Positions 8,625 to 63,987 are shown, numbered from the stretch's first letter. The stretch is DNA of 64,000 bases from IMGVR_UViG_3300026518_000006:124001-188000, one strand, 5' to 3'. Program-made: numbers and translations. Notes: generated by a model not told the origin, from the sequence alone.

Positions 8625-8912
8625 TTATATCAAATATTCTTGGTTTTTGTCAAGATATTTTTTGATATGCCATTTTTCCATAAAAAATAAAAATGAACCC
8701 AAAGGGATAACAATAATCCAAAAATAAGATTCAATTTCATCCAACATCTCAAGCATAAAGTCGCTATAAGTTGTATTTTGTGCTAATTTTAATTCATCGA
8801 TTATATACTTTTTATCAGTCCCCCACTCATCAAAAATATCATACTTAATAAACCCAAAAATATTAAATGAAGTAAAATTATTTATCAAAGACTCTGCTCT
8901 ATTTTTAATCAT
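8625..8912 (-). CDS. Hypothetical membrane protein with C-terminal tag QEYLI
   Basis: ORF, one TM segment, terminal motif. Confidence 0.6.
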   Translation of the reverse strand: MIKNRAESLINNFTSFNIFGFIKYDIFDEWGTDKKYIIDELKLAQNTTYSDFMLEMLDEIESYFWIIVIPLGSFLFFMEKWHIKKYLDKNQEYLI

Positions 8913-8921
8913 TATAGTCCT

Positions 8922-9413
8922 TTATTTTATTATAGATATTTTTTTGGTTGGTGATTGTGATAATTTTGTATTATAGTATTCTATTTTAATATCTACAGTA
9001 TCTTTTTTTATAACCGAAATATCATCGTCAGATACAACATATAAAACCTCTTTTGTTTTTGGGTCAAAAACATAAAATTTTAAAATATTATCCTGTTTTT
9101 TATATGTGAAGGGTAGATTTTTAATTGTTATGGGCTCTTTATTTACAGGGGTAAACACTGTATAGTTTATAATAGATACTCCAAAAAACCCCAATATAAA
9201 ATAAAACCTAGCCATATTAGCCGTAAGCCCTTCAGAATCTGTTCTGTGTAGAACAATTACTAAAGATAAAATTAACAGCCCTATTAAAAAAATACCAATA
9301 TCAAAGTCAAAAAAAGAATACACTACCAATACAATAGTAGAGAAGATAAAAAATACCCCTCTCTCTTTAAAAAATAGTAGCCATAAATTTTTCTTATAAC
9401 TTATCCTGTTCAT
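8922..9413 (-). CDS. Hypothetical membrane protein
   Basis: Three hydrophobic segments. Confidence 0.6.
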   Translation of the reverse strand: MNRISYKKNLWLLFFKERGVFFIFSTIVLVVYSFFDFDIGIFLIGLLILSLVIVLHRTDSEGLTANMARFYFILGFFGVSIINYTVFTPVNKEPITIKNLPFTYKKQDNILKFYVFDPKTKEVLYVVSDDDISVIKKDTVDIKIEYYNTKLSQSPTKKISIIK

Positions 9414-9652
9414 TTTACTTTCCTTGTTTGGGGATATTTAATATGAATCCAATTGAAAAATCTTCTTACAAAATAACTTCTCACAAAAGAAACAGCTGTG
9501 AAAATTACCGCTATTTGCGTGTTTCCTGCTACACCGAAATCTACATCATACATAGCAAATACTATAGGTTGTACGACAAATATAGACAACAACAGCCCAA
9601 ATATAAGCCCGAATGTTATCTCGATTATTGACCATTTTTTAGTTTGCACCAT
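9410..9652 (-). CDS. Small two-TM phage membrane protein
   Basis: SIIE...G....Q...F...FT.VS..RSY..RR.FN pattern, which I recall from small phage membrane proteins. Confidence 0.65.
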   Translation of the reverse strand: MVQTKKWSIIEITFGLIFGLLLSIFVVQPIVFAMYDVDFGVAGNTQIAVIFTAVSFVRSYFVRRFFNWIHIKYPQTRKVK

Positions 9653-9658
9653 AACCCC

Positions 9659-9883
9659 TTATATAAAAAATTCTGAGTTTTCTTTTTTAAATTTCTTTAC
9701 AACATAATTGGAATGCTCTACCCAAATATAAATGAAAGGAAATAGTACTATAAAGATAAATACTCGGATTAAACCGTTTTCTAAATACAACTCTTTTGTT
9801 AGTTTTAAATAACTAAAGTCTTTGTTTAATTTTTTTATATCTTTAGCAATTTTAATTTTAGCTTCTATGGGTAAATTATTCAT
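9659..9883 (-). CDS. Hypothetical protein with C-terminal tag SEFFI
   Basis: ORF, terminal motif. Confidence 0.6.
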   Translation of the reverse strand: MNNLPIEAKIKIAKDIKKLNKDFSYLKLTKELYLENGLIRVFIFIVLFPFIYIWVEHSNYVVKKFKKENSEFFI

Positions 9884-9919
9884 TTTTTGTAATCAAAGAA
9901 AATTCTATATTTAAAAATA

Positions 9920-10228
9920 TCATAACTCATCATTTTCGTACATTTCCTGAAGCAACTCTTCATTAAAAGATTGACTCTTTAAAGATGCTGTTATTCGTGC
10001 TGTATCACTTTCCATCAGTGGAGCTTTAAGAAGTTCACCAACAAGCTCTTTGCTCATTGCTATCTTCAGTTTTAAAGCGTCCTCATACCCAATTTTAGAG
10101 AGCCCCTTAATGCGTTTTCCATATAAGTACACCCCTTTTGGCATAATATCTTTATTTCGGAGATACATTTCATTGATATCATCATATGAGCTTCCATCTA
10201 TCGCATAGTATTTTTTTTGAGGTTCCAT
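9920..10228 (-). CDS. Hypothetical protein
   Basis: ORF with RBS and upstream promoter. Confidence 0.6.
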   Translation of the reverse strand: MEPQKKYYAIDGSSYDDINEMYLRNKDIMPKGVYLYGKRIKGLSKIGYEDALKLKIAMSKELVGELLKAPLMESDTARITASLKSQSFNEELLQEMYENDEL

Positions 10229-10253
10229 ATTTTATCCTATTCTAAATTTAAAT

Positions 10254-10276
10254 ATTATATAGAAAATAAACTTAAA
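10254..10276 (-). promoter_or_regulatory. TTTAAG-N11-TATAAT promoter
   Basis: Same architecture at 15815-15836, 39383-39405 and 54212-54234. Confidence 0.6.
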
Positions 10277-10329
10277 TGTAGGTAAATACAGATAAATATA
10301 GTGGTTTTGAATGAGTTTGAGGGGCGGGG

Positions 10330-11638: not shown

Positions 11639-12136
11639 TTATACCAAAAATTCAGGGGCAAATTCTATAATATGAGATTTTAGTTTATCCATAGTTTTCA
11701 TTATCCCTTCGACATCTACACGACTGTTTGCCAAAGAAAATGATTTAAATTTTCCTCTTTTGTGTTTAAAATCAAAATAAATCCTAAAATCAACACTTGT
11801 AAAGTTAATTATATCACAATTTTCTAAAAAAGTAGGTATTTCCTCATTGACACCTTTTATAAAATTATGTATAGGTTTGTCTTTAAACTCAAGCTCATAC
11901 AATTCAAAACTATCAATTTCATCTCTACCACTAAACTTGAGCTCTATCGCATTTATTTTTACGCTTTCATTAGTGATAAATGTCACTATTTCTTTTATTA
12001 CAGGCTGATTTTTAGTCTTTATTATGAGTTTTTCTTTTGGATTTAAAGAGGATATTTCATCATCAATCACATCTTTGACAATATCCTCAATAATAGGTTT
12101 TAATGTTTTATGTAGTATTTGTTTAAATATATTCAT
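11639..12136 (-). CDS. Hypothetical protein with C-terminal tag PEFLV
   Basis: ORF, terminal motif. Confidence 0.6.
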   Translation of the reverse strand: MNIFKQILHKTLKPIIEDIVKDVIDDEISSLNPKEKLIIKTKNQPVIKEIVTFITNESVKINAIELKFSGRDEIDSFELYELEFKDKPIHNFIKGVNEEIPTFLENCDIINFTSVDFRIYFDFKHKRGKFKSFSLANSRVDVEGIMKTMDKLKSHIIEFAPEFLV

Positions 12137-13276: not shown

Positions 13277-13804
13277 TTACGAAACTGTAATAGTGAAAGT
13301 AACTGTGTTAGAAACAACACCATCAACAGAAGCGGTAATATCAACTGTACTACCATCGGTAGCGGTTCCCACTGCAATTTCAACAACGCCTTTGCTACTT
13401 GCATCATTCGAAACAGTTGCTTGAGTTGTATCGCTTGAAGTAAATGTTAAAATACTATGGTCGTTAGATACACTACCATCACTATATGTGATAGTTGCGC
13501 TTTCTAGTACTTCGGAATCTTTACTACCATTAATTAAAGTGGGGTCAGCATAACTAATAGTAATGCTCGCTATTGTAACGGGTGTCGGAATGCTATCGAT
13601 GTATTTCTTTGCATAATATGCTTCGTATGGGTCTCCTACGACTTTTCCACTTCCGTCTTTGTATGAACCTCCTGAAGCAATATCATAAGTGGTTCCAATC
13701 GTGTTACCGTCTTTGTCTTTTGCAGGGTATTCTGCAATGATATCTGTTTTATTGTCAGTTGTTTGTAAATCCAATACAGCTTGTGCTTGTTCTTTTGTCA
13801 CCAT
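13277..13804 (-). CDS. Virion decoration-type protein with C-terminal Ig-like (Big_2) domain
   Basis: ATITYSDGS...LTFTSSD...ATVS...ITASVDGV pattern. Confidence 0.65.
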   Translation of the reverse strand: MVTKEQAQAVLDLQTTDNKTDIIAEYPAKDKDGNTIGTTYDIASGGSYKDGSGKVVGDPYEAYYAKKYIDSIPTPVTIASITISYADPTLINGSKDSEVLESATITYSDGSVSNDHSILTFTSSDTTQATVSNDASSKGVVEIAVGTATDGSTVDITASVDGVVSNTVTFTITVS

Positions 13805-13823: not shown

Positions 13824-14387
13824 TTATATTGTCAGGGTAATAGTCACATCTTGTGTTGAGCCATCAGGTACACTATTAAAATCGCTAATAGCTGTTGCGT
13901 CTTGAGTTTGATAAAAAGGTGTATTTCCTGTTGTTGGTGCAAATGTTAGTGGATAATCATTTCCATTAATAGTGATTACTAAATCTCCATCAACTTTACT
14001 ATTTACTCCATCGACATTAAACGATACTCTCAAAAAGGCTCCGACTTGTGCAAGTTGAGAAGATAGTGTAAAGATTTCATATTTACCTATCATTTTTGGA
14101 GCTAAGTCACCATATCCTGAAGCTTGGGATGTTCCCGATTTATATCCTCTTTGTTGTCCTGAGTCAGATGTTCCCATTGTTAATGTTGCGATTAATGAAG
14201 CACTTGCAGTACCTCCGTTTTTCTTCGCAAACATTAACTCATAAGGGTCTCTGTGGTCAATTTGATAAGAAGTTTTGCCCGATACAATTACGCCATTTTC
14301 ATAAAATGGATATTCAGCTTGAATTTCATCTCCTAAGCTAAATCCGTGTAGTTTTGTAACAGCGTTAGTTTGAGATTGAGTAGCCAT
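13824..14387 (-). CDS. Late virion protein sharing its N-terminal domain with 13277-13804
   Basis: Shared AEYP...DPYE..AKK motif, and TATAAATA at 14410-14417. Confidence 0.55.
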   Translation of the reverse strand: MATQSQTNAVTKLHGFSLGDEIQAEYPFYENGVIVSGKTSYQIDHRDPYELMFAKKNGGTASASLIATLTMGTSDSGQQRGYKSGTSQASGYGDLAPKMIGKYEIFTLSSQLAQVGAFLRVSFNVDGVNSKVDGDLVITINGNDYPLTFAPTTGNTPFYQTQDATAISDFNSVPDGSTQDVTITLTI

Positions 14388-14619: not shown

Positions 14620-14859
14620 TTAGAATTTATATTTTAATAACACTCTTATATTACTAATCTCAGCCTCTTTTATTACTTTCCGATTAATTTTAATACCATA
14701 TGTTATTTTTAAAGGTATGTTTTCACTTAATATACCGATATTTTTATCATCTATACTTATCTTTGATATATGAGATGTTCGGAATTTTTTTTGAATAATT
14801 TGGGAGTTATATGCCGTCAGTTTAGTGAAGATTAATATCAAATATAAGAATTTTTTCAT
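14620..14859 (-). CDS. Hypothetical protein with signal-like N-terminus
   Basis: 79-aa ORF after TATAAATA at 14881-14888. Confidence 0.4.
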   Translation of the reverse strand: MKKFLYLILIFTKLTAYNSQIIQKKFRTSHISKISIDDKNIGILSENIPLKITYGIKINRKVIKEAEISNIRVLLKYKF

Positions 14860-14907
14860 ACCCTCTTCTCCTTTTGAGGGTATTTATAAAAAGTATATGT
14901 CTTATGT

Positions 14908-15309
14908 TTAGATGGTGCCTAAGATTTCTCTAATTTTTCGAAGCTGTTCTCTCGCTCTTCTAACGGCAAACGGGTCATTCGGGTCTAGTTTGGAGCCTTT
15001 ATGAAATCCGGGAAGAAGTCTAATAGGAACCTCATCGATTGGTATTCCTACTGTTTCAGGATTTTCTGTGATGTTGTGTTTTGAAGCTCTTTGATTTTCT
15101 TCTAAAATTTCTTTATTTTTCTTAACAACTTCCTTAGTTCTAACAGGTTTTTTGGGTTCTTTTACCTCTTCTTTGACCTCTTCTTTGACCTCTTCTTTGA
15201 CCTTTTTAGGTCTCCCTCTACGCTTTGGTTTAGTTTCTGTTTTTTCAGTCGCCTCAATACTCTCTTCAGATTGTATTGAAGACTCTGTTTTTTTGGTTGT
15301 TTCGGACAT
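14908..15309 (-). CDS. Charged low-complexity protein (EEVK repeats)
   Basis: ORF coupled to the Hsp20 gene. Confidence 0.55.
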   Translation of the reverse strand: MSETTKKTESSIQSEESIEATEKTETKPKRRGRPKKVKEEVKEEVKEEVKEPKKPVRTKEVVKKNKEILEENQRASKHNITENPETVGIPIDEVPIRLLPGFHKGSKLDPNDPFAVRRAREQLRKIREILGTI

Positions 15310-15782
15310 TAAAATACCTTTTTGGTTTTATTTATAGGTTCAGCAAGTATAAACGAAATAGTCAAGATTCCATTTTCAAGTGTTACATCTACTTCCCCAT
15401 CATATGCTTCTTTTGGGATTAACACCTTTGTTTCAAATGGTTTTTTTTCAAACTGTTTTATGGCGTATACTTCATTCATATCATTTTGTGGCTGTTCGGG
15501 GGTTCCGACAATATATGTGATATAAGAATTATCCTCAGCTTTTAACTCAACACTAATTTCATCTTTTGTAAAACCTGTTGCTTGAACCTCAATAAACATA
15601 TTTTTTTCGCCAATTTTTGAAACATTTATAGACGGCATATTTTTTCTCCATTTTGTTTTATCTAAAGTTTCATCTATGATTTCATCTAATGATTTGTATC
15701 TTTTTGCAGGCAATCCATCTTGGTCTTCGAATATTTTTATACCCCAAGTGTCGAAGAAATCTTCAATAAACTTATCTCTCAT
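15309..15782 (-). CDS. Small heat-shock (Hsp20/alpha-crystallin) protein
   Basis: SINV...IEVQATGFTKDEISVEL...LENGILTISF. Confidence 0.75.
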   Translation of the reverse strand: MRDKFIEDFFDTWGIKIFEDQDGLPAKRYKSLDEIIDETLDKTKWRKNMPSINVSKIGEKNMFIEVQATGFTKDEISVELKAEDNSYITYIVGTPEQPQNDMNEVYAIKQFEKKPFETKVLIPKEAYDGEVDVTLENGILTISFILAEPINKTKKVF

Positions 15783-15863
15783 ATGCTTTCCTTTTAATAT
15801 TTTTATAATTAAGAATTATAACATTAAAAACTTAAACAAACTTTAAAATATTTAGTAGAGCTA

Positions 15864-17321
15864 TTAATACCAATAAAATACTTTATTGCCACTATCAAAA
15901 ATTTGTCTATACCCATTATCGAACATATTTTGAAGTGCTGTTTTGTTTTCATCGAAATCAAAATCCTTAATATCTTTTAATTTATGCTTTTGAAACTTTT
16001 GTCTGCTATACAAGATATATGAATTGTGTTTAAAGAAAAAGAAATTTTTATCAGAATTATGACTAAAGAAAAACCCAAGAGTCTGATATAAATTTCCATC
16101 TGACCATCTTCGATTAGCATATGAAATTAAACTTCGTCCAATATGTTTTTTAAATCTATTTAATAGCTTGGAGGCACCACCTATAACAACTGTGTTCAAT
16201 TTTGTGCAAAACCTAACCAACTCATAATCTGCTTTTTTGTTAAATCTATTTTTAGAAAAAGTCATCACTGAAACCAACTTATTATTATAGAACAGCCCGT
16301 AATTTATCGAAGAGTGACTTCCGCCTTGCAGGTGATTATCTTCACAAAAATAAAAAGCATCTTTAGAACTAATCTCTTTAATTTCTGTATCTCTTGCATA
16401 TATTCTGTTATCAGTCTTATTTAGTCTATTTTTTATTACACTCTTCCACTTTTCTTTATTAAGAATCCACTCATTTTCAAAAATGTGTAAAAGTTGTATT
16501 CCGTTTTCTTCACAGACATCAGTTTTATGTTTATGTTTATTGGGGTTGAAATGATTTAAATTGTTCGGAAATGTTGACCCTTTTGAATGAAAGGTCAATC
16601 CATCGTATTCGATGGCTAAATTATATTCAGGTATGTATATGTCCAACTCAAAACCCAAGTGCATATCTCTTTCTATAATATTCTCTACCCCTATATCGGA
16701 TAGAAAGGATATAATCTCTTTCTCTGCATTAGATTGTTTATTGGAACATTTTGAACATCCTTGACCATTTAGATGAGCGTTTGGTTCCATTAAAAACTTT
16801 CCGTGAGTTGGACACAATATCTCAATTTTTTCTTTGCTATGTTTATATTCACTCACATATTGGTATTTGTACTGATGTTTTTTATTAAAATCTTCTACTG
16901 CTTGATTGTGGTCTTTTTTTGAATGATTGTTTCTTATAAGGTTGGCACATTTTGGACACCCAGACCCATTTTTATGGTTTTTGGGTGTCGGAAAAAAACT
17001 ACCGTGTATTTTACAAGTTACTTCGACAGGTGTTTTCATATTAATAAAATTTACTTTATCGTATGAGTATTTTTCACCGTGTACTTTTTTAAATTGTTCG
17101 ATTACGGTTTCAGTGGTGTACTTAGAGGATTTGTTGCATTTGCTACAACCTGCTCCTCTCATATGATGGTTTGGAGTCTGAGGAAACTCCCCGTGTATAG
17201 GACATATTATAATCATTGGGGTGCGGGTGTCCACTATACTATCTTCAATATATGTGTATTTATTATTGTGCTTTTCATGACACTTATTTAGTATTTCGGT
17301 TTTTGATAATTTCTTACTCAT
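15864..17321 (-). mobile_element. Hef-like homing endonuclease
   Basis: Three CPxHG..HxxGxGCxKC repeats, ELDIYIP..LAIEYDG..H nuclease motif, and C-terminal ELVRF..GGASKL domain. Confidence 0.8.
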
Positions 17322-17355
17322 TTTATATTATAGCATTATTGATATTAATTCAAAA

Positions 17356-18477
17356 TTAATCAAAAGCACCACTATTAATTTTTCGCATAGCATCAAAAGC
17401 TACATCAGGGTCATATGAACTCATATTTTGAAGCATACGGTCTTTCGTATAATCATCACTGCCATCATCAAACCCACCATCTGTGTCTAATAATGAATAA
17501 TAATCTGCTGTTTTTACACCATCTTCATCTTCTTCAGTATCTAAATCTATATTCTTTCTTAATACATCTAAAAATAAATCAAAATCATCAAACGCTTTTA
17601 TGTGCATAAATGGGGCAAAAATAATAGCTAAACTCATTATCATATCATCGTGATAGCCCTCTTCAGCTTCATATTTTTTCTTCACATTATCGCTTTTAAT
17701 GAAGTTAAAAAATTCGTTGATAGTATCTCTGTCTTGAACTATTAATTTCCCCTCTTCTATAAAAATCTTCAACATATTGATAATAAGAGGTCTTGATTTT
17801 ACAGTAGTTCTAAATCCGTAATATTTTTTATATTTTTTGTCTCCGTCATCTCTATCCCGATACATATTTGGATATTCGTAGTTGAGGTATAAAATATCGG
17901 CTACACTTTGTCCTGCACCTTCATTATTTTCGATAACTAAAAAAGCTTCATTATAATAAAGCCCTAATGTTTCAATATATTCAGGCATAACAAGATAATC
18001 TACATCTAATTTAGCTGAAGCAACCTGTATAAATGGAAATTTTGTAATATCAACCACTTGAATACTAAAACTATCTATCCCTTCTTTTGATGGGTCAATA
18101 CCAATGATGTAATTATGTCCTTTTATAGGTTTTTCATAAATATTAATCCCGCTGAATATGGTATCTTTAGCGACAGGTTCTTGTGGCACCATTAACTTCA
18201 ATCTTTCTGTACTAATCAGTGTTGAGGCAGAGCCAAGAAATTCACACGCCTCTGTTTGTGCGAAGAATTGTGCTCCATTTCTTGCTATTGTTTGTTTCTT
18301 GTACTCTTGAGGGGATAAAGGATTTCCTTTTTTATCAAAATGAGGAACTTCAGTCCAACTCGCTGTTACCAATCGGTGCCCGCTTTTGGACTTAAAAATA
18401 TTATATTTTACTGTATATGTCCCGTCAGGGTTTTTAATTATCTCTTTAATATCATTTATAGATTTTATTTTAAGCAT
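17356..18477 (-). CDS. gp17: Large terminase fragment 4 (nuclease domain)
   Basis: CEFLGSASTLI, IIGIDPS, IENN, HDDMIMSLAI. Confidence 0.92.
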   Translation of the reverse strand: MLKIKSINDIKEIIKNPDGTYTVKYNIFKSKSGHRLVTASWTEVPHFDKKGNPLSPQEYKKQTIARNGAQFFAQTEACEFLGSASTLISTERLKLMVPQEPVAKDTIFSGINIYEKPIKGHNYIIGIDPSKEGIDSFSIQVVDITKFPFIQVASAKLDVDYLVMPEYIETLGLYYNEAFLVIENNEGAGQSVADILYLNYEYPNMYRDRDDGDKKYKKYYGFRTTVKSRPLIINMLKIFIEEGKLIVQDRDTINEFFNFIKSDNVKKKYEAEEGYHDDMIMSLAIIFAPFMHIKAFDDFDLFLDVLRKNIDLDTEEDEDGVKTADYYSLLDTDGGFDDGSDDYTKDRMLQNMSSYDPDVAFDAMRKINSGAFD

Positions 18478-19100
18478 TATTCAACATCCATTATAATAGG
18501 GTGACGCTCTATAGTATGAAATTCTTTATAAATTTCTTCCAACGAAAATTCACCTAAAGCATCAATTTCGATTGTATCATCTTCAGACAACACAACTTCT
18601 TCGTCTTTAAAATTGATATTTTTAGCACCCTCCACTAGTTGAAAAAAGTGGTTCATACCATTAGCTGTAGAAGTGTTTATAACCTGTTTAAATATCAATG
18701 AGTTCATAGTAGGTATTACAGCATCGATAAAGTCATCCCAATCTTTTGATTTTATATAACCCGCTTCGTCAGTGTAGATAATATTGCAATTATGAGACTC
18801 AATCATATTTGTTGTATATGTGTGCCCCCTTACACCCACAACATCATAAAACTCAAAAGCCCCCTCTTTGTGAGTAATATTTTTTATTACACCATTGGAT
18901 ATTTTATCACCAACTTTTAAATTTTTGGCTTGTCTAAAAATTTTTCCTGATTTTGATTTTCCTACTAATAATCTATGGTCTTCGGTACATTTTAAACTAC
19001 TATTGTCAGTTTCAATATAGTAAAGTATTTTTTTATTAATTCGTCTAACTGTTTCAAAATCTTCATACCCTCTCTCAGTTTTTATCATATAATCGTTCAT
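18477..19100 (-). CDS. gp17: Large terminase fragment 3: IntC2 (104 aa, 18789-19100) plus Walker B and coupling motif
   Basis: CTEDH block B, ends ESHN|CNIIYTDEAG, STANGMNHF. Confidence 0.9.
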   Translation of the reverse strand: MNDYMIKTERGYEDFETVRRINKKILYYIETDNSSLKCTEDHRLLVGKSKSGKIFRQAKNLKVGDKISNGVIKNITHKEGAFEFYDVVGVRGHTYTTNMIESHNCNIIYTDEAGYIKSKDWDDFIDAVIPTMNSLIFKQVINTSTANGMNHFFQLVEGAKNINFKDEEVVLSEDDTIEIDALGEFSLEEIYKEFHTIERHPIIMDVE

Positions 19101-19971
19101 AAAAAGCTCCTATTAGATTTTCTTTTGTTATAGATGATTTCCAATTTTTAGATGAATTTAATTCTGATGGCAACATCTCTAAATTAATGATATTTCCTAT
19201 TATATAAGGAGGGATACCTTCCTTAAACCCCATAATTTTTGAAAATTTATGGTCTATATTATAAAAACCTTTTCCTCTCCCTCTTTTGTTATAGTTCGTC
19301 AAGGTATATAAATCTTGAGCTTTAGTTACTTTATCCACTTCTCTACAGTATAATTCATAATCTGAGAGTTCACTTTCTTTTACCCAAAGTCCGTTAATTT
19401 CCTTTAATTTTCTATAATTTTTTACTCTACATTTTATTTTCCCACAAGTAGGTCTATACCCTTGTCCATATGATAAATATTTTCTTGGTTTACAACAATA
19501 TTCACATTTTGGCTCTTCTTTCATATCATTCATAAATAAATATATATTTTTAGATATATTATTTGTTATTTTAGGTATAGAACCATAGATATCCATTATT
19601 AACTGATTTTTATTATGGTAGTTATCGGGTTTTATTTTGGATATGTAATTTTTAAGGTCATTTACGGATTTATCGAGTTTATTTTCAAGTTTCGGTGCAT
19701 TTAAATCATCCATTTGGCATTTGTGTGAGCAATATTTAGCATAACCATCTGATATATTTTTAAATTTTGTTTTTGCACCACATTTACATATTGGGGGTAT
19801 TAAAATGTTATGTTTTATAATATATAGCAACTCATTCAATTTATTTGTAGTTGGTGGAATTTTTGCATTTTCTAATAATTTTTGATAGTGAATTTTATAG
19901 AACTCAGATTTTGATGTTAATTTTCCAAAGCTTTCAAACTCTAACAACTCAATAATTGACAGTTCTTTCAT
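19075..19971 (-). mobile_element. Free-standing HNH homing endonuclease with Zn-ribbon repeats
   Basis: NIDHKFS...NLEML..LNSSKN motif and two PxC..C..F..GY..C repeats. Lies between IntN2 and IntC2. Confidence 0.75.
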
Positions 19972-20659
19972 ATAACTCTTTTATAGTAATTTTTTCTTCT
20001 TTTAATGTTTTTTTATTTATAACTTCTACCGTAGTATCAGGAGATACACAAGTATATCCACGAAAGCTGTCACTTGATGGGCTGTCTGTCATAATCCTTG
20101 TGCCGTTTTCAAACTCGATATTTGATTTGTTCCACACCGATATCCCATTCATAAGCCATATTGGAAGCTCTAAGAAAACCTTTTTAATTTTATCCAATAC
20201 TTCACGGGCTGTGGACGGTTTATTGGCTACAATCCCAATATTTATAGCAGTATCGTGAAACATAGCTCTCCACAACAGATAGTTGCCCACTGTAACCGTA
20301 TTATGGCTAAGAATATCATTAGTGTAATAAAGATTATCCCCACTAACACTTAAATCATACATTTCTTCTGAGTACCCTAAATCTATTACTTTCGTTACTT
20401 TTGAATCGCCTTTTTTTGTATTTAAGATTTTTCCTAAACTATTTTTTGCAAATACTTCTTGAAAGTCATTAGTAATTAAAATATGGTCATCAGCACACTT
20501 TATTTTTAGTCCATTTTGCAGGTGCACTTCATATAATCTGTATTTAACAGTTTTATTAGTTTTAGTTATATCTCTCCAACCATCGTGGCTTTCGACTTGC
20601 CAATCATTGACATCAAATTGTTCTGTAAATTTTCGGTTTATTTTATCTGATAGTTTCAT
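19949..20659 (-). CDS. gp17: Large terminase fragment 2: IntC1 (120 aa), 83-aa extein, IntN2 (33 aa)
   Basis: CADDH block B, LSHN|TVTVGN...DSFRGYT|CVSPDTTVEV. Confidence 0.92.
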   Translation of the reverse strand: MKLSDKINRKFTEQFDVNDWQVESHDGWRDITKTNKTVKYRLYEVHLQNGLKIKCADDHILITNDFQEVFAKNSLGKILNTKKGDSKVTKVIDLGYSEEMYDLSVSGDNLYYTNDILSHNTVTVGNYLLWRAMFHDTAINIGIVANKPSTAREVLDKIKKVFLELPIWLMNGISVWNKSNIEFENGTRIMTDSPSSDSFRGYTCVSPDTTVEVINKKTLKEEKITIKELYERTVNY

Positions 20660-25186: not shown

Positions 25187-25459
25187 TTAGACCATATATT
25201 CAGGGTAAGCCTTACTAAGCAACTCTTCCATTTCTATATAATTTTTCTTTTTATCGGCTTTTCTTATTTTCTTGACAAGTTCATTTGGAAGAACTTCAAC
25301 TATTATTATTTCTGTTTCATCTTCAACAGGTATATTATCTTCCAATAGACCTAAATCGAAACCATACACATCAGATATTATGTTTGGTTCAGCAATCTTT
25401 TCAGCTATAAATATACCTCCATCATCAGGGTTTGATGGTTTGTAAAAATATATCACCAT
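25187..25459 (-). CDS. Hypothetical protein with C-terminal tag PEYMV
   Basis: ORF, terminal motif. Confidence 0.6.
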   Translation of the reverse strand: MVIYFYKPSNPDDGGIFIAEKIAEPNIISDVYGFDLGLLEDNIPVEDETEIIIVEVLPNELVKKIRKADKKKNYIEMEELLSKAYPEYMV

Positions 25460-25712: not shown

Positions 25713-25955
25713 CTAATTCTTCTTTAAATTATTTTTTATTGCTTCAAGTTTTTCGTATTCTTCTATGGATAACAGTACCCCTTTAGGCTCTCCATTTTCT
25801 AATAGGGTAATACTTCCCAATATAGGCAGAGCTTCAAAGATTTTTTCAAACTCTGATTCAGACACTTTATTAAAATCTTCCACATTTATCATAACAATAG
25901 GAGTGCTAAGTGTATTATTTGATGTGTTGTTTGGTGTTTTGAAATCAGAACTCAT
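25713..25955 (-). CDS. Phd/YefM antitoxin-like small protein
   Basis: ITLLENGEPKGVLLSIEEYEKL resembles the Phd/YefM core. Confidence 0.5.
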   Translation of the reverse strand: MSSDFKTPNNTSNNTLSTPIVMINVEDFNKVSESEFEKIFEALPILGSITLLENGEPKGVLLSIEEYEKLEAIKNNLKKN

Positions 25956-26140
25956 TTATTTCTCCATCTATTGGCTTAGAAAATTTTTTAATAACTTTTT
26001 TCATAAATACTAATTTGTTTTTATCTTTAAAGACTTCCTCTTTTATAGCGTATTTCCACATAGTATCATCCTTATTTTATAATTATAGCATATAAAACTT
26101 ATTTATACCTTAATAAACAAAATGCTTCTACATAATATGT

Positions 26141-26405: not shown

Positions 26406-26422
26406 TTTGCTATGCCTGTTAG

Positions 26423-26727: not shown

Positions 26728-26751
26728 AACCATCCTCTATTCTATATGGTG

Positions 26752-26919: not shown

Positions 26920-26950
26920 TTTCAAATCCTTTTCACTCTAAATATACTGT

Positions 26951-26979
26951 ATTATAGTGTAATAATTTTAAAATGTCAA
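26951..26979 (-). promoter_or_regulatory. Sigma70 early promoter
   Basis: TTGACA-N17-TATAAT. Confidence 0.88.
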
Positions 26980-26989
26980 GCTCTTTTAA

Positions 26990-52580: not shown

Positions 52581-52620
52581 AGATTTTACTTTTCAAAAAA
52601 GTAAAATCTCTCAAAGAGCC
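52581..52620. repeat. Palindromic intergenic element, copy 4
   Basis: AGATTTTACTTTTCAAAAAAGTAAAATCTCTCAAAGAG between convergent genes. Confidence 0.85.
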
Positions 52621-54179
52621 TACATATCCTCAAAGTTAATTTTTTTGTGATTCTTGAGAGTAGGTGTTACACCATCACCATTTTCTGTAGTATTGAGCCA
52701 CAGAACTTTAGGTTTAAATTTCAACCAATTTTCATCAGTATCCACATCTTCAATATACATATCAGAAATCATAATCAGCACATCGGGCTTCGCATTTTTG
52801 CTTTCAAGGAACGGCACAATAGCACCCATATATGTACCTCCATACCCTCTTCGTTTAAAGTGCTTATTTTTTTCTCCAAATTCTTCAATGCTTTTAATTT
52901 CTGTATCAATTTGAATAACCTTCAAATCGGTACCGTTAAGTTTAGCTACTTCCAAAATCTCAACAAGACCGTCCAAAATTTGTTCATCACTCATAGACCC
53001 TGAAGTATCAACTCCAACATAAATTTCGTGTTTATCTTTTGTGACCTTTTTACCTCTTAGGTCAGTTCTTCTTGGAAATCTTCTATCTCTTCGTTTGATA
53101 GTAGGCTCTCTCTTTCCTGTTTTTGAGCTGAGTATTCTTCTCAGTTCTTTTTTCCAAGAAACTTTTGGTTTTCGTCTAAGGATATCCAAAATCTGCTCAA
53201 TATCTCCCGGAAGATGACCTCTTTGGGTAGAACTCATAGAATCTTTAACCATTTTTTCTGCAACAGAGCGAGCGAGTTCTTCTGAGTCTTCATCACTTTC
53301 ACACCAAGTAGAATGATTGTCGATTGTATAACTTTTGTCGAGATTTGTTAAGTTAGGGTGTCCGTTAGAAGGCTCCCATTTACCACCATCTTGTTTTCCT
53401 GAGCCACCACAGGATTCACAAGGCTCTTTACCTCCATCTTCATTAGCTTGACTTTGACCATTTTCGTCTTTATTTCCATCTTCTTGACTTTGACCATTTT
53501 CGTCTTTATTTCCATCTTCTTGACTTTGACCATTTTCGTCTTTATTTCCATCTTCCTTATTTTGACCATTTTCGTCTTTATTTCCATCTTCCTGATTTTG
53601 ACCTTGGTTATTCTTGTCTTGTTCTCCTGAGCCACCACAACTTGAACAAGAGCTCTGATTTTTCATAAACTCACTTTTCTCTTTTTCTTGTTGTTTTTTT
53701 TCTTCTAAAAGGAGTTCATAGTATTGTTCAGCGGTAAGGTTTTGGGGGAAATCAAAATCTTCAGGATAAAGGGCTCCACCAACTTTTTTGCCTGTCACAG
53801 GGTCTTTTGTTCCTTGGGGAAGGTTTTTGATAAGTTGATTCATAGCGATATCAGAAGCGTAATTGAACAACTGATGGTCACGCTCACCCTGTCTGAAAAT
53901 GTGTCCTGAAATAATATGGCGACTTTCGTGGACAAGAACTGCAATTCTTTCGAGCAAAGACCATTTTTTAAACTCATCCCCAATTGCAAGATTGTATGAG
54001 TTTCCTGAAAATGATACGCCTGCTGTTTTGATTTCGGGAATGAATTTAATGCGACATTTTGCAATAATAAAAGAGTAGAAAGACACATCAAGCATCTCAG
54101 GGTTAGTCATCATATTCGCCAATGCTTCTTCGAAAGCGTCTCTGTCGGGCTGAATGTTATATTTCTTGTTTTCGGTCAT
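52620..54179 (-). CDS. Metallopeptidase-like plus VWA protein (DUF2201-type), typical partner of MoxR-like AAA ATPases
   Basis: LVHESRH (HExxH), DIAMN, VSWKKELRR, VGVDTSGSM MIDAS, GYGGT, ISDMY. Confidence 0.85.
   Translation of the reverse strand: MTENKKYNIQPDRDAFEEALANMMTNPEMLDVSFYSFIIAKCRIKFIPEIKTAGVSFSGNSYNLAIGDEFKKWSLLERIAVLVHESRHIISGHIFRQGERDHQLFNYASDIAMNQLIKNLPQGTKDPVTGKKVGGALYPEDFDFPQNLTAEQYYELLLEEKKQQEKEKSEFMKNQSSCSSCGGSGEQDKNNQGQNQEDGNKDENGQNKEDGNKDENGQSQEDGNKDENGQSQEDGNKDENGQSQANEDGGKEPCESCGGSGKQDGGKWEPSNGHPNLTNLDKSYTIDNHSTWCESDEDSEELARSVAEKMVKDSMSSTQRGHLPGDIEQILDILRRKPKVSWKKELRRILSSKTGKREPTIKRRDRRFPRRTDLRGKKVTKDKHEIYVGVDTSGSMSDEQILDGLVEILEVAKLNGTDLKVIQIDTEIKSIEEFGEKNKHFKRRGYGGTYMGAIVPFLESKNAKPDVLIMISDMYIEDVDTDENWLKFKPKVLWLNTTENGDGVTPTLKNHKKINFEDM
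53448..53602. repeat. 36-bp tandem repeat, about 4.3 copies (QSQEDGNKDENG)
   Basis: Seen directly; flanked by two CxxCGGSG motifs. Confidence 0.9.
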
Positions 54180-57350: not shown

Positions 57351-57737
57351 ATTCCTTTTTTAAAATTAATGTATTTTACTATCTTAAAATCAAGATAACC
57401 TTAAAAGGTTTCTTCAATAAATATCACATCTGTATATATAGTATTATTTGGAAATTTCATAACTATCAGATTGTTTTTATCAAAATTCCCAATATAGTTA
57501 TCTACTTCTTCCCCATATATAAGGTAGTTTTGTTCTTAATTTAAGTTCATTTTCAATATCTTTATATTCTATTTTCTTCACTTTACAAAATCCTTTTCTG
57601 AAATATGTTTGAGCGAGTTTTGATTCGGGCGAAGTGCCTATAAACGCCTCTTCTTTAGTTTTAATACTTATGGCTCTAATTAAATAGTAATTATTAGTCA
57701 TATATGGACTTTCCATAAGCTTTAACGCACATATCAT
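57347..57737 (-). pseudogene. Probably disrupted hypothetical gene
   Basis: The frame shifts near 57540 into EQNYLIYGEEVD...EETF, with TAA at 57401-57403. Confidence 0.4.
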
Positions 57738-57970
57738 ATTAAAAACTCCGCATTTTCATTTTTAAAATTTTCCAACCTCTCTTTAAGTATCTCCAACATT
57801 TTATTTTCATAACTCCACTGTTTTTTTGCTTGGTTTAACCTTTCTTCATCAGAAGTATATCTCATTATGCTATCATAATATTCCAATGCACTATATGTCT
57901 GATTTATAGAATTTTCTATATCAGCTAAAGTCTTGTTAAAATCTGCTTTAGTGAGTGGTCTTGTACTCAT
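57734..57970 (-). CDS. Coiled-coil hypothetical protein with tag AEFLI
   Basis: ORF, terminal motif. Confidence 0.6.
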   Translation of the reverse strand: MSTRPLTKADFNKTLADIENSINQTYSALEYYDSIMRYTSDEERLNQAKKQWSYENKMLEILKERLENFKNENAEFLI

Positions 57971-57983: not shown

Positions 57984-58331
57984 TTATACCCAATATTCAG
58001 GAAACTTTTTTATGTGTGCTTTTATTTCCCTTTTTATTTGTTCGGGAACTTTGGCGTTTTTGTTTGCTGTTATAATATTATGGTAATATTTAAACAAATC
58101 CACTTTATTAGTGTATAAATTTTCCATATCAGTATTAAAAGTCATATAAAATATCTTTTCAGAGCGTCTATTTAAATCCCTAAAGCCATATCTATATGAA
58201 TATGGTTTAGGGTAAGTACTAATATTCTCAATATCTTCGACTATATATATTCTATATCCAACTTTAGTTTGAGAACTTCGTATAGCATATATTTTTTGCC
58301 CAAGCTCCAATTTTTCATCGGCTTTTATCAT
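57984..58331 (-). CDS. Hypothetical protein with tag PEYWV
   Basis: ORF, terminal motif. Confidence 0.6.
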   Translation of the reverse strand: MIKADEKLELGQKIYAIRSSQTKVGYRIYIVEDIENISTYPKPYSYRYGFRDLNRRSEKIFYMTFNTDMENLYTNKVDLFKYYHNIITANKNAKVPEQIKREIKAHIKKFPEYWV

Positions 58332-58340
58332 AACAAATCC

Positions 58341-58613
58341 TTATACAAATAATTCAGGAAATATCTCTTGATATCTCATACAACTCTCTTCTAAAAATTT
58401 TAGGTTCGATGGATTTTCTGTGAGTGTAAATCCAAAAACCTTGTATGCAATATACTCTTCCAAAACATCTAAAAATAAACTTTGGGATATAGTTAATTTT
58501 TTAGAGTGTGACAGCATACCTTCACTTATGTATTGCTCTACCTGCTTTTTAACTTCAGGGTCATAACAAAACTCATCTCCAAGAGGGTCATTCATTTCGT
58601 TTTGATAATCCAT
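58341..58613 (-). CDS. Hypothetical protein with tag PELFV
   Basis: ORF, terminal motif. Confidence 0.6.
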   Translation of the reverse strand: MDYQNEMNDPLGDEFCYDPEVKKQVEQYISEGMLSHSKKLTISQSLFLDVLEEYIAYKVFGFTLTENPSNLKFLEESCMRYQEIFPELFV

Positions 58614-62187: not shown

Positions 62188-62801
62188 TGGAAAAGACTAT
62201 CATTTTAATCAACGGAAAAAAACGAAGTGGTAAAGATTTTAGTGCGGATATACTGCAAGATAAGTTGAGTAGTTTAGGAGGAGCAGATAAGATTTCTTTT
62301 GCTACTCCACTTAAACAAATTATAGCTGATACATTCAATATACCTATGGAAGACTTAGAAACCTTTAAAAATGATGTGAATGGTTATGGTATTGAGTGTA
62401 AAGCCTACCCGAACAATCAGCCTGAAGTGACATTTTTATACACAAATTTCAGAACTATTTTGCAAAGATTTGGTACAGAAGGTATGAAGCCTGTGTTCGG
62501 GAAAAGTGTTTGGGCGGATATCACCTATAAGAACTCCATTGAAAGTGACAGTAAATATATCATTATACCTGATTTTAGATTTTATGTAGAACACGATGTT
62601 TTTTATAAACCATTTAAAGAGGGGAAAATAAAGCTTGTCACCCTAAAAATAGAAAACAGTGATGTGGAGGTTGATGATGCTCACGCTTCTGAAAAAGAAC
62701 TTGATGATTTCCACTTTGATTATATTATAGATAATACAGGATATACAGAGCATCTGCCTGAGTATTTGGACAGCTTTATAGATACCCATTTAAAAGATTA
62801 A
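62187..62801 (+). CDS. Deoxynucleoside monophosphate kinase
   Basis: INGKKRSGKD, SFATPLK, RTILQRFGTE, IPDFRF..E, HASE. Confidence 0.85.
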   Translation: MEKTIILINGKKRSGKDFSADILQDKLSSLGGADKISFATPLKQIIADTFNIPMEDLETFKNDVNGYGIECKAYPNNQPEVTFLYTNFRTILQRFGTEGMKPVFGKSVWADITYKNSIESDSKYIIIPDFRFYVEHDVFYKPFKEGKIKLVTLKIENSDVEVDDAHASEKELDDFHFDYIIDNTGYTEHLPEYLDSFIDTHLKD

Positions 62802-62847
62802 TTTTTAATTTTTATAAATAACATAATAACCTTATAAGGGGACTACA

Positions 62848-63333
62848 GTGGGTATCAAGTACCAATTAAAATTAAATGAAATGCTTGGAAAATTATTGAC
62901 TAATGAGATTTCAGCAAGTTCAATGTATGTTGAGGCTTCAGGATATATAACGGATATTACTCTTTCAAAAGAAATTTTGACACACGCTGAAGAAGAATTT
63001 GGTCATTTTCAAAAACTTATGAAATTTTGTATTAATCACGGACTAAAAACAAATTATGATTTTGACAGAACTGTGATTAAGAAAGTTCCAAAGAATAAAA
63101 AGCAGATAATCAAGTTGATTCAAAATCTTGAGCAACAAGCAATACAAGATTATAAAGAGGCTACTATTTTTGCAAGACAAAATAATGATATCGAAGCTGA
63201 AGCATTATTTACTGAAATAATGAATGATGAGATAGAGCACTTTGATGATTTAGCACAAGAAACAGGTCAAACAAGAAGATTGGGCGAAGGTTTTAAAAAC
63301 TTTAAAGCTCAATTTGAAAAGATTGAGGACTAA
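62848..63333 (+). CDS. Ferritin-like (di-iron four-helix) protein
   Basis: NE...Y, EEFGH, E..A...Y, DEIEH motifs; late promoter at 62813. Confidence 0.75.
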   Translation: MGIKYQLKLNEMLGKLLTNEISASSMYVEASGYITDITLSKEILTHAEEEFGHFQKLMKFCINHGLKTNYDFDRTVIKKVPKNKKQIIKLIQNLEQQAIQDYKEATIFARQNNDIEAEALFTEIMNDEIEHFDDLAQETGQTRRLGEGFKNFKAQFEKIED

Positions 63334-63371
63334 TCAATTACCTTCGGTTAGTCCTTTTTAGTACTTAATTA

Positions 63372-63530
63372 TTAGTCGTAGTGCTCAACCTTTTTCATCT
63401 TCTTTCTGTTGTATCTCTTTTTGTTTTGTGTGTTTCGGATAGTCCCTATCTGACACTCACCACGAATACCTGCTAAAATATTCAAATCCCTTGGTTTAAC
63501 AGTCTTTTTATTTTTCTTTTTCTTAGCCAT
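63372..63530 (-). CDS. Small basic early protein (52 aa)
   Basis: True start is ATG 63530 after the RBS AAAGGA; the longer ORF call runs through the promoter. Confidence 0.6.
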   Translation of the reverse strand: MAKKKKNKKTVKPRDLNILAGIRGECQIGTIRNTQNKKRYNRKKMKKVEHYD

Positions 63531-63560
63531 TTTCAATCCTTTTATAATATTTATAAGACT

Positions 63561-63589
63561 ATTATACAATAATCTTTGAAAGAAGTCAA
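63561..63589 (-). promoter_or_regulatory. Sigma70 early promoter
   Basis: TTGACT-N17-TATAAT. Confidence 0.85.
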
Positions 63590-63629
63590 GGATTTTTGTG
63601 TATTTTTTGAGTATTTTGAGGACTTTTAA

Positions 63630-63669
63630 AGATTTTACTTTTTTAAAAAGTAAAATCTCTTGAAGAGGT
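63630..63669. repeat. Palindromic intergenic element, copy 5
   Basis: AGATTTTACTTTTTTAAAAAGTAAAATCTCTTGAAGAGG. Confidence 0.85.
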
Positions 63670-63678
63670 GAGAAAAGG

Positions 63679-63987
63679 TTATATCCCGCACTCAGGGTAA
63701 CGCTCATATATACTTAGTAGTTTTTCATTTAGGGTATCGACACTTTTTTGTAGGCTTTCGTTTTCTTTCTGTAGAGATTCTATTATGTCTTGAGAATATT
63801 CCACCTCTCCATTTAAATCTTTAATTTCATTGATAGCCACATCTATCTGAAGTTCAAATTCTTTAATTTCTTCATTTGTTTTTTCGATAATAGAACAAAG
63901 TGGACATTCCATACCGTATCCGATAATGGGGTTATGTCTATTGGCAAAATCACCAACACACACCCACAAAAATTCTTCATCTTCCAC
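63679..63987 (-). CDS. Coiled-coil protein with Zn-like motif and tag PECGI
   Basis: C...H....CPLC, terminal motif. Confidence 0.6.
   Translation of the reverse strand: MEDEEFLWVCVGDFANRHNPIIGYGMECPLCSIIEKTNEEIKEFELQIDVAINEIKDLNGEVEYSQDIIESLQKENESLQKSVDTLNEKLLSIYERYPECGI

Follow-up and report, generated by a model that had tools for sequence, protein, structure and literature searches.

The window analysed here is a stretch of 64,000 nucleotides (IMGVR_UViG_3300026518_000006:124001-188000) of a large T4-like phage. Fifteen of its 108 called genes encode proteins that end in E-x-x-[IV], and all 15 are on the minus strand. Three more genes carry a variant ending in P-Y-[LI]-I, and three decayed remnants are present. 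The tagged genes, remnants and relevant neighbors are as follows.

8625-8912 (-): 95-aa protein with one hydrophobic (membrane-like) segment; tail NQEYLI, with Pro replaced by Gln
9659-9883 (-): 74-aa protein with one hydrophobic segment followed by a Lys-rich stretch; tail NSEFFI
11639-12136 (-): 165-aa soluble protein without a Pfam or PHROG hit; tail APEFLV
25187-25459 (-): 90-aa protein; tail YPEYMV
26141-26563 (-): decayed region with two remnants, an ORF fragment ending GEYFI (stop at 26141), and QFPEHLI at about 26465-26485, which has lost its stop and reads on for 13 residues
27046-27771 (-): 241-aa conserved protein next to RNase H; tail FPEVFI
27907-30802 (-): RNase H (ends LIGLLPLF), gp32 (ends DDLLAEIA) and the gp45-type clamp, each with a C-terminal tip different from the tag
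33828-34040 (-): 70-aa protein; tail NPEYTI; paralog of 36367-36573
34448-34663 (-): 71-aa protein; tail YPESLI
34676-34885 (-): pseudogene remnant ending KYPQNLI, with an in-frame stop 27 codons before the end
34924-35184 (-): 86-aa protein; tail CPEVLI
36367-36573 (-): 68-aa protein, predicted SH3/Tudor-like beta-barrel followed by a short C-terminal helix; tail YAEYFV
36599-37027 (-): 142-aa protein; tail RPEHSI, with a weak hydrophobic residue at -2
36999-37256 (-): 85-aa protein; tail KPEYFI
37265-38191 (-): three adjacent ORFs (37265-37564, 37574-37891 and 37898-38191) ending TPYLI, QPYII and QPYII; the last two are paralogs
38243-39349 (-): MoxR-type AAA_5 ATPase immediately upstream of the largest tagged array
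57734-57970 (-): 78-aa helical protein; tail NAEFLI
57984-58331 (-): 115-aa protein; tail FPEYWV
58341-58613 (-): 90-aa protein; tail FPELFV
63679-63987 (-): 102-aa coiled-coil-like protein; tail YPECGI, with an atypical Gly at -2

Enrichment of the tail in the window

The first-pass annotation reported that at least 18 unrelated small proteins share a C-terminal tag, and this observation was confirmed and proved stronger than first described. All 20 listed termini, including those of two broken genes, read exactly as given. Enrichment of the terminal residues over internal positions and shuffled termini had been proposed as a test. The pattern E..[IV] at the carboxyl end was found in 15 of 108 genes, against 200 internal matches in 19,264 positions (1.1 expected; binomial P = 6e-13). 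The pattern [PA]E..[IV] was found at the end of 13 genes, against 0.095 expected (P = 4e-24). Of 206 shadow ORFs, none matched [PA]E..[IV] at the terminus and one matched E..[IV], and shuffled termini gave a mean of 1.1 and a maximum of 6. The DNA pattern CCN-GAR-N6-RTH-TRR occurs 11 times on both strands, each time at the end of one of these ORFs.

Some details of the first description required correction. Two pairs of the listed proteins (36367/33828 and 37574/37898) are paralogs. The TPYLI and QPYII (x2) termini lack the Glu and look like a separate small family with its own ending, E-[IL]-x-P-Y-[IL]-I, so their membership in the tag set is uncertain. The third remnant, QFPEHLI, had not been listed. 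The tagged genes had been described as accessory, but the 241-aa gene at 27046-27771 is not a dispensable ORFan; it is a conserved syntenic gene next to RNase H in relatives. The conserved unit is also longer than five residues. It comprises about 14 residues forming a helix, a kink, and then P-E-x-Φ-Φ at the free end. Counting back from the carboxyl end, it is hydrophobic at -13 and -10, Lys/Arg at -9, and Tyr/His/Phe at -6, followed by Pro-Glu-x-(Phe/Leu)-(Ile/Val/Leu).

We found no Pfam or PHROG family that describes the tail. Ten tagged window proteins were scanned against Pfam and four of those against PHROGs, and 10 tagged proteins of Vibrio phage phiTY18 were scanned against Pfam and six others against PHROGs. 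None gave a significant hit; one sub-threshold PHROG hit of unknown function appeared. We found no paper describing the tail. Tripartite sorting tags (PEP-CTERM, LPXTG, GlyGly-CTERM) consist of a motif followed by a transmembrane helix and a basic cluster, but nothing follows the motif here, which is the free end. The type 1 secretion C-terminal signal (an acidic residue plus a hydrophobic end, carried by secreted proteins with a cognate ABC exporter) has a format similar to E-x-Φ-Φ, while the tags also sit on membrane-like proteins with Lys-rich, presumably cytoplasmic ends.

Distribution, conservation and dialects in related phages

The tail is not private to this phage, which the first-pass annotation did not recognize. 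It is common in a whole clade that includes cultured Vibrio phages, and many uncultured relatives have it. In phiTY18, 76 of 346 ORFs end in [PAD]E..[IV], against 0.44 expected, and a broader pattern gives 85. In the cultured Vibrio phages about a quarter of all genes carry the tail. Among minus-strand phiTY18 ORFs of 150 aa or less, 79 of 197 are tagged. No tag was found in the first 50 kb of T4 or in 50 kb of Campylobacter phage CJLB-13. The MoxR-type ATPase gene has the same arrangement with respect to a tagged array in the genomes designated L002, L015 and L077, and its phiTY18 ortholog is 42% identical.

The proteins that carry the tail are largely unrelated. The 76 phiTY18 bodies form 72 BLASTP clusters, and the 14 in L015 show no similarity to one another. 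Bodies range from 41 to 379 aa, and some have membrane-like segments. AlphaFold2 (AF2) models predict an SH3-like barrel for the 68-aa protein and an alpha/beta fold with no PDB match for the 241-aa protein. A recurrent sub-family of SH3-like proteins of about 70 aa with an N-terminal GD-x-Φ-x-Φ motif also carries the tail.

Orthologs retain the tail. The family of the 241-aa protein has 77 representatives (clusters at 50% identity), nearly all ending in [YFH]-[PIV]-E-x-Φ-[IVL]. Of 73 full-length representatives, 60 keep Glu at -4, nearly all have I, L, V or F as the very last residue, and nothing is ever tolerated after it. Orthologs of the 68-aa protein keep AEYF[VI]. An ortholog of the 115-aa protein with 56% overall identity keeps 11 of the last 12 residues. 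Tail identity between ortholog pairs exceeds body identity in five of seven comparisons but falls below it in two.

Each genome has its own dialect of the tail, shared by its unrelated genes. The last residue (I, V or L) depends on the genome (chi-square 117, P = 7e-23). The 241-aa family follows the dialect, and a prediction from this one ortholog held. In L077 the family member ends in FV, and 5-6 of the other tags end in V at a GC content of 33%; in the genome L079 it ends in FL, and five of five tags end in L. In genomes L012-L014, four of the five tail-like ends read P-Q, one reads P-Y, and none reads P-E. The L and Q dialects are each monophyletic on the gp32 tree. These dialects argue for a single co-evolving reader, although each dialect is confined to one clade, and shared ancestry plus local copying of tails by recombination could mimic such co-evolution.

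Coding of the tail and overlap with downstream genes

The tail is under selection on the protein, not the DNA. The first-pass annotation had noted synonymous variation of the Pro and Glu codons, and codons vary synonymously both within and between genomes. Relatives keep the residues while using all Pro, Glu, Leu and Ile codons and all three stop codons. In L002 (GC 43%) the tags use CCT/CCG/CCC/CCA, GAA/GAG, GTT/GTA/GTC and all three stops, and L015 encodes the terminal Leu as TTA, CTA, CTT and TTG. Positions -6, -9, -10 and -13 are also conserved as amino acids.

The tail's codons have a second use at the RNA level, which had been missed. When the next gene overlaps (ATGA), the tag is written CC[G/A]-GAG-N6-ATA-TGA, which spells a Shine-Dalgarno (SD) sequence (GGAG or AGAG), an 8-nt spacer and the start codon of the downstream gene. 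In phiTY18, 23 of 24 tagged genes with an overlapping downstream gene have this form, and the last Ile is ATA in 51 of 72 cases, against 20% genome-wide. The same design appears in L015 and in the genome L044. In the window, the gene at 57734-57970 ends in GCG GAG ... ATA TGA and overlaps the ATG of the next gene. Tagged genes are enriched in tightly packed arrays, where this use also applies.

The tail could in principle be a by-product of translational coupling, conserved as RNA with an incidental peptide. This explanation is very unlikely and already largely refuted. In phiTY18 the peptide is kept with GAA (no SD) in 25 of 26 genes whose successor starts 0-25 nt downstream, and in 27 genes with no near successor. 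Most window tags end in TAA and are followed by a separate SD, and the P-Q dialect (CCT CAA) contains no SD at all. The first 50 kb of T4 contain several such 4-nt stop/start overlaps but no tag.

A common recognition signal as the favored interpretation

We consider the tail a portable protein module placed on many unrelated, mostly small accessory proteins, inferred to be non-late, of one deep clade of T4-like phages. It most likely works as a common recognition signal, and we favor this explanation with moderate confidence. In this view one partner, which could be phage-encoded, host-encoded, or the tails themselves pairing with each other, reads the end of all these proteins, and a large share of the accessory proteome would be handled together, whether docked, chaperoned or removed. 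Selection on the protein, strict terminal position, unrelated bodies, retention in orthologs and genome-wide dialects are demonstrated by our analysis, whereas the existence of a single reader is inferred from sequence alone, and its identity and the outcome of being read remain conjecture. The earlier interpretation as a shared addressing signal, such as a degron, a docking peptide or a packaging signal, is partly supported. Its named candidate readers receive little or no support. The clamp seems to use a different C-terminal tip, no homolog of the SPFH protein was found in phiTY18 at BLASTP E<1e-4, and the MoxR AAA family, proposed together with a VWA partner, is widespread in phages, most of which lay outside our survey of tags.

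A generic structural cap, or one hyper-divergent superfamily, is an unlikely alternative in which an intramolecular helix-kink-hook closes or stabilizes small domains without an external reader. Pro at N1 and Glu at N2/N3 are textbook residues of a helix start, and the hydrophobic positions at -13, -10, -6, -2 and -1 form one face. In the 241-aa protein, AF2 models a long C-terminal helix, a kink and a one-turn helix, and places the tail confidently (pLDDT about 88) as part of the long terminal helix, which fits a structural element at least as well as a free docking peptide. However, tail pLDDT is only 68 in the 68-aa protein, against more than 90 for its body. The bodies include predicted beta-barrels, an alpha/beta fold and membrane-like proteins with no detectable similarity. 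A purely intramolecular role does not explain why unrelated proteins of one genome all switch I→L, I→V or E→Q together, nor why nothing is tolerated after the last residue in 73 divergent members of the 241-aa family.

C-terminal degrons of bacterial AAA+ proteases (ssrA ...LAA; MuA ...RRKKAI) share a terminal position, a non-polar last residue and a need for the free carboxylate, and one reader handles many unrelated substrates. A degradation tag would be a specific version of the favored explanation, in which non-late accessory proteins, including membrane proteins with cytoplasmic ends, are handed for timed clearance to host ClpXP, ClpAP, Lon or FtsH, or to a phage ClpP working with a host unfoldase. 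This remains possible but is doubtful. Tags occur on soluble and membrane-like proteins whose ends should face the cytoplasm, and the main tagged arrays lack the late-promoter motif TATAAATA that precedes structural genes. The Vibrio phages pv27 and phiTY18 encode their own ClpP (Pfam CLP_protease, E = 8e-49), an S49 peptidase and a trypsin-like protease. The phage ClpP and the trypsin-like protease were found only in the Vibrio phages, however, and none is in the window. The consensus P-E-x-[FL]-[IVL] is not an Ala-Ala or Lys-Lys-Ala-Ile type ending. Known degrons are short and degenerate and sit on flexible tails, whereas this motif carries far more information, with near-invariant Pro-Glu, a conserved upstream amphipathic helix and clade-specific dialects.

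T-even internal proteins are described as highly diverse defense proteins that share only the capsid targeting sequence (CTS) (PMC3012670). In T4 this short peptide is carried by IPI, IPII, IPIII and Alt. The T4 CTS read from the genome is MKTYQEFIAE, and its aromatic-x-E-F-I core resembles [YHF]-P-E-x-F-I. A C-terminal counterpart that loads diverse defense-countering proteins into the head for co-injection was considered, but it is very unlikely. [YHF]-P-E fits, on sequence alone, the Φ-x-E pattern cleaved by T4-type prohead proteases, but cleavage after Glu would remove only three residues. The CTS is N-terminal, directly after Met, is cleaved off by the prohead protease, and sits on a handful of head-packaged proteins expressed in time for head assembly. 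The tag is always at the extreme C-terminus and is found on 20-25% of all ORFs, including membrane-like ones, and 76-85 different cargo proteins is far beyond any known case. The TATAAATA motif precedes the structural genes in the same window but not the three main tagged arrays, although one site at 26100 lies about 640 nt upstream of 25187, and no virion proteomics exists for these phages.

C-terminal tips also serve as docking peptides to replisome hubs in this phage family, as for T4 gp43, gp55 and gp33 at the clamp and for SSB or gp32 acidic tips. T4 gp43 ends SLDFLFG and gp55 ends SLDFLYEAND, and tagged arrays flank the clamp, gp32 and RNase H genes. A clamp- or replisome-binding role is nevertheless very unlikely. 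Tag-bearing phages have their own distinct polymerase, RNase H and gp32 tips; the polymerase ends SLDDW (as in phiTY18) and RNase H ends ADDFGW or LIGxLxΦΦ, unlike the tag. The late sigma factor lacks the tag, the tag sits on proteins with no recognizable function, and 80 or more clamp partners is implausible.

Sorting tails such as PTS1 (-SKL), encapsulin cargo-loading peptides and poxvirus PRANC/F-box tails on ankyrin proteins offer an analogy of logic only. In these systems many unrelated cargo or adaptor proteins carry one short C-terminal tail read by one receptor, and in poxviruses a large share of a viral gene family carries a common C-terminal adaptor motif. There is no sequence similarity to the tail described here, and no compartment is known in these phages.

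The tail behaves like a previously undescribed address label. In the broadest reading, which we consider about as likely as not, it would be a virus-encoded, proteome-wide C-terminal address code, marking a quarter of the phage's proteins and about 40% of its small ORFs for one co-evolving reader. The reader could be a phage-controlled unfoldase/protease, a chaperone or an assembly hub, or the tails could zip to one another. Dialect switches (I/V/L at the end; E to Q at -4) would record reader-tag co-evolution, and the tail would also be spread to new genes together with the ribosome-binding site it encodes.

Genomic setting and gene ends

The window belongs to a 235,593-bp IMG/VR contig (IMGVR_UViG_3300026518_000006), and its GC content is about 31%. 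It carries a T4-type replication module consisting of gp32, a gp45-like clamp, RNase H, a DnaB-like helicase, and an intein-containing ribonucleotide reductase and helicase, together with a MoxR AAA ATPase, an SPFH protein, and plus-strand structural genes. By gp32, its nearest cultured relatives are six Vibrio phages of about 191-196 kb (pv27, phiTY18, phiKT1024, Va1, TDDLMA, and SRILMA; about 42% identity), and Campylobacter T4-like phages come next. The following loci of the window were also noted.

1343-4573 (-), ribonucleotide reductase large subunit carrying an intein with a LAGLIDADG domain
30886-33856 (-), a helicase in pieces: 32861-33856 has DEAD/ResIII plus a Hint N-terminus, 31772-32857 is a TnsA-like endonuclease, and 30886-31800 is the helicase C-part
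17356-20659 (-), a large terminase gene that appears to be split: three ORFs (17356-18477, 18477-19100, and 19949-20659) all match one 632-aa phiTY18 TerL, and a homing-endonuclease-like ORF (19075-19971) lies between them
39639-41813 (+), two adjacent capsid-protein-like genes: 39639-40844 (major head protein PHROG) and 40854-41813 (Pfam Gp23), the second of which has a homolog that in pv27 lies inside the replication module
38243-39349 (-), MoxR-type AAA_5 ATPase, conserved in phiTY18 (42% identity)
52620-54179 (-), a 519-aa protein with a VWA-type MIDAS motif (DTSGS), labeled an HNH endonuclease by PHROGs and conserved in phiTY18 (34% identity)
25955-27046 and 34676-34885, gene-decay zones with stop-interrupted or read-through remnants of tagged genes, showing turnover of this gene class
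9410-9652 (-), an 80-aa ORF ending IHIKYPQTRKVK, which may be a P-Q type tail followed by five extra residues, that is, a tail that has been extended or is decaying

The first-pass annotation listed twenty termini sharing a C-terminal tail, and its observation is confirmed, as every one of them reads as it was given. With a simple greedy gene call of 108 genes, 15 end in E-x-x-[IV]; the same pattern occurs 200 times at 19,264 internal positions, so 1.1 terminal matches are expected (P = 6e-13). Thirteen end in [PA]-E-x-x-[IV], against 0.095 expected (P = 4e-24). All are on the minus strand. Among 206 shadow ORFs, 0 match [PA]E..[IV]$ and 1 matches E..[IV]$, and shuffled termini never exceed 6. 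The DNA pattern CCN-GAR-N6-RTH-TRR occurs 11 times in the window, in each case on the minus strand and at one of these ORF ends. All-against-all BLASTP finds only two related pairs, 36367/33828 and 37574/37898. The three ORFs ending T/Q-P-Y-[LI]-I lack the Glu and are treated here as an uncertain variant. The two genes described as broken are real remnants, and a third remnant, QFPEHLI, has lost its stop codon.

Selection on the peptide, scale, and dialects

A DNA signal was suspected first, because 13 of the 15 E-type tails in the window end in ATA or GTA before the stop, which looks like a -10 box. This promoter (-10 TATAA) reading of the ATA-TAA ending was rejected because spacing to the next start is too short and relatives use other codons and stops. 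The locus L002 (an IMG/VR locus with gp32 63% identical, GC 43%) has 8-9 tagged ORFs among 36, and these use all four Pro codons, both Glu codons, GTT/GTA/GTC/ATA at the last position, and TAA/TAG/TGA stops. The locus L015 has 14 of 29 ORFs ending [YH]-P-E-[YL]-x-L, plus a 15th ending HSEYFL, and Leu is encoded by TTA, CTA, CTT, and TTG. A DNA-level repeat or cassette was rejected because of this synonymous variation, and the constraint is therefore on the peptide. Megablast of the tagged array against the phage collection gave no match.

The complete genome of Vibrio phage phiTY18 was used to assess scale. In it, 76 of 346 ORFs end in [PAD]-E-x-x-[IV], against 0.44 expected from the internal frequency. 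Allowing Leu and a few variants at -5 gives 85 ORFs, and among minus-strand ORFs of 150 aa or less, 79 of 197 (40%) are tagged. With the last 14 residues removed, the 76 bodies form 72 BLASTP clusters. A position-specific profile shows conservation beyond the pentapeptide: hydrophobic at -13 and -10, Lys/Arg at -9, Tyr/His/Phe at -6, Pro at -5 (4.1 bits), Glu at -4, Phe/Leu at -2, and Ile at -1. No tagged protein scanned against Pfam or PHROGs gave a significant hit, and in the parts of the pv27 record examined (1-100 kb and 147-188 kb) every tagged ORF is annotated as hypothetical. The first 50 kb of T4 and 50 kb of Campylobacter phage CJLB-13 have no tagged ORFs. A tblastn search with a 25-aa tail against 50,697 phage records found only orthologs in the six Vibrio phages, but the query is too short to be general.

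The tail is present in many of 68 gp32-anchored IMG/VR loci that were retrieved. On a gp32 tree the tag-bearing genomes form two deep groups, the window's group (window, L002, L010/L011, L077, L013/L014 with the closely related fragment L012, and L015/L079) and the pv27-like group. The untagged Campylobacter-phage lineage is sister to the pv27-like group, which implies either a loss or two gains.

Each genome has its own dialect of the tail, and the last residue depends on the genome (chi-square 117, P = 7e-23). The counts are I 69, L 7, and V 5 in phiTY18, V 7 and I 1 in L002, and L 14 of 14 in L015, while the window is mixed for I and V. This was tested as a prediction using the family of the 241-aa protein at 27046-27771. 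Family member P0008 ends ...ELFV, and on its contig (L077, GC 33%) 5-6 of the tags end in V; family member P0038 ends ...EYFL, and on its contig (L079) all 5 tags end in L. In L012-L014, four of the five tail-like ends read P-Q-x-F/V-I (CCT CAA), one reads P-Y-H-F-I, and none reads P-E. Unrelated genes of one genome thus share a dialect, and an orthologous family changes its tail to match. This is the main argument for one common reader, or for tails that recognize each other. However, each dialect is confined to one clade, so ancestry plus local copying could contribute.

Retention, predicted structure, and codon use

Orthologs keep the tail. The 241-aa protein at 27046-27771 belongs to a family with 77 representatives at 50% clustering. 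Of 73 full-length members, 60 have Glu at -4, position -5 is Pro or an aliphatic residue in nearly all, and nearly all end in I, L, V, or F as the final residue, with nothing after it. The ortholog of the gene at 57984 keeps 11 of the last 12 residues at 56% overall identity, and orthologs of the gene at 36367 keep AEYF[VI]. In pairwise comparisons the tail is more conserved than the body in five of seven pairs.

AF2 models the 27046 protein (pLDDT 86) as a mixed alpha/beta protein, ending in a long helix (216-233), a kink, and a one-turn helix (235-238), with pLDDT about 88. It has no PDB fold match. The possibility that this family is DUF932- or gp59-like was not supported, as the only hit is T4_Gp59_N at E = 0.14 and the modeled fold is mixed alpha/beta. 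AF2 models the 36367 protein (pLDDT 87) as an SH3/Tudor-like barrel followed by a short helix and a turn, and the tail pLDDT is 68 against more than 90 for the body. Other tagged proteins have single hydrophobic segments followed by Lys-rich tails, so the tag should face the cytoplasm. The bodies are therefore truly different, and the tail looks like a helix, a Pro-Glu helix start, and then a hydrophobic hook.

The tail also has a second use at the RNA level in phiTY18. When the next gene overlaps by ATGA, 23 of 24 tags read CC[G/A] GAG N6 ATA TGA, which is GGAG or AGAG placed 8 nt before the downstream ATG. When the next start is 0-25 nt away, 25 of 26 use GAA. ATA is used for the last Ile in 51 of 72 cases, against 20% genome-wide. 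The tail's codons are thus tuned to double as a ribosome-binding site, but the peptide persists without that role.

The T4 late-promoter motif TATAAATA is enriched about two-fold in the window (27 sites against 14.5 expected). It sits 30-40 nt upstream of most plus-strand structural genes, so T4-style late transcription is probably conserved, and it also lies just upstream of minus-strand fiber-like genes (13277-13804 and 13824-14387) and a few other untagged minus-strand ORFs. It does not precede the tagged arrays 38191-33828, 58613-57734, or 9883-8625, although one site at 26100 lies about 640 nt upstream of 25187. The tagged genes are therefore probably not late genes, which counts against capsid loading as the role of the tail.

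Candidate readers, related systems, and significance

The clamp, an AAA/VWA pair, and the SPFH protein were named as candidate readers in the first-pass annotation. The clamp is unlikely, because the polymerase (SLDDW), RNase H (ADDFGW or LIGLLPLF), and gp32 (LDDLLxxL) each have their own distinct tips. Such tips are conserved at window 27907-28923 and 28932-29864 and in L002, L013-L015, L077, L079, and pv27: RNase H ends LIGxLxΦΦ (window clade) or A[DE]DFGW (pv27 clade), gp32 ends LD[DA]LLxxL, and the phiTY18 split polymerase ends SLDDW. These are probably hub-binding tips. The MoxR ATPase heads tagged arrays in four genomes, and a VWA partner with a MIDAS motif exists (52620-54179). As a specific reader it was set aside because its family is widespread in N4-like, rV5-like, and other phages, at most a minority of which were checked for tags. 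No homolog of the SPFH protein was found in phiTY18 at BLASTP E<1e-4.

Phage-encoded chaperones and proteases were also considered. Both pv27 and phiTY18 encode a set of protein-handling genes, GroEL/GroES, ClpP, an S49 peptidase, and a trypsin-like protease, but these could be shown only for the Vibrio phages. ClpP and the trypsin-like protease were rejected as clade-wide readers on this basis. Phage GroEL was also rejected; it is about 55-61% identical to the GroEL genes found on other IMG/VR contigs, and the search for it in the source contig was swamped by such genes. Loci noted in the Vibrio phage pv27 and its clade are as follows.

pv27 (OR413349.1) 8800-9105, 16284-17864, 68921-69832, 97197-97781, and 161259-161918, encoding GroES, GroEL, an S49 peptidase, a true ClpP (E = 8e-49), and a trypsin-like protease; pv27 also encodes an Alc-like protein, a TROVE/Ro-like protein, and a 698-aa protein with an ADP-ribosyltransferase domain
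L003 (pv27) 14856-16569 and about 35 IMG/VR loci, an actin-like (ParM/Alp7A-type) protein 58-81% conserved across the pv27-like clade, preceded by two small proteins that share their own C-terminal motif, E-[ML]-x-[DN]-[LF]-[DE]-[FIL]; this may be a phage DNA-segregation or positioning module

The nearest precedent in logic is the T-even capsid targeting sequence (CTS), where the internal proteins are described in a review as highly diverse defense proteins sharing only the CTS (PMC3012670). We verified MKTYQEFIAE at the N-termini of ipII and ipIII, and the Y-x-E-F-I flavor is similar. The terminus, the scale, the timing, and the presence of membrane-like proteins all differ. C-degrons, clamp- or SSB-type tips, PTS1-like sorting tails, and poxvirus PRANC tails are analogies and not families to which the tail belongs. 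Literature searches by motif, phage name, and general phrase, including the pv27 and phiTY18 genome papers, gave no description of the tail, and it is apparently undescribed.

The analysis establishes that the feature is real, highly significant, selected on the protein, and widespread in one phage clade. That the tail is a shared addressing signal, as the first-pass annotation proposed, remains an inference. This interpretation is partly supported: it is the best-supported reading and somewhat more likely than not, but the reader is unidentified and several mechanisms remain possible. The route by which the tail spreads is also inferred, in that a gene moving with its upstream ribosome-binding site would carry a tail-coding segment with it.

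If one tail governs the fate of a quarter of a phage's proteins, it is a new layer of viral gene-product control, and it predicts an unidentified reader. It offers a portable 14-residue tag for biotechnology, and the cultured Vibrio phages make it directly testable. The dual coding, in which the tail also serves as the ribosome-binding site of the next gene, suggests a mechanism by which new genes acquire the tail when they are shuffled. The tail would then also be a handle on phage "dark matter": it would group hundreds of ORFans across a widespread clade of uncultured T4-like phages, known mostly from metagenomes, into one functional class.
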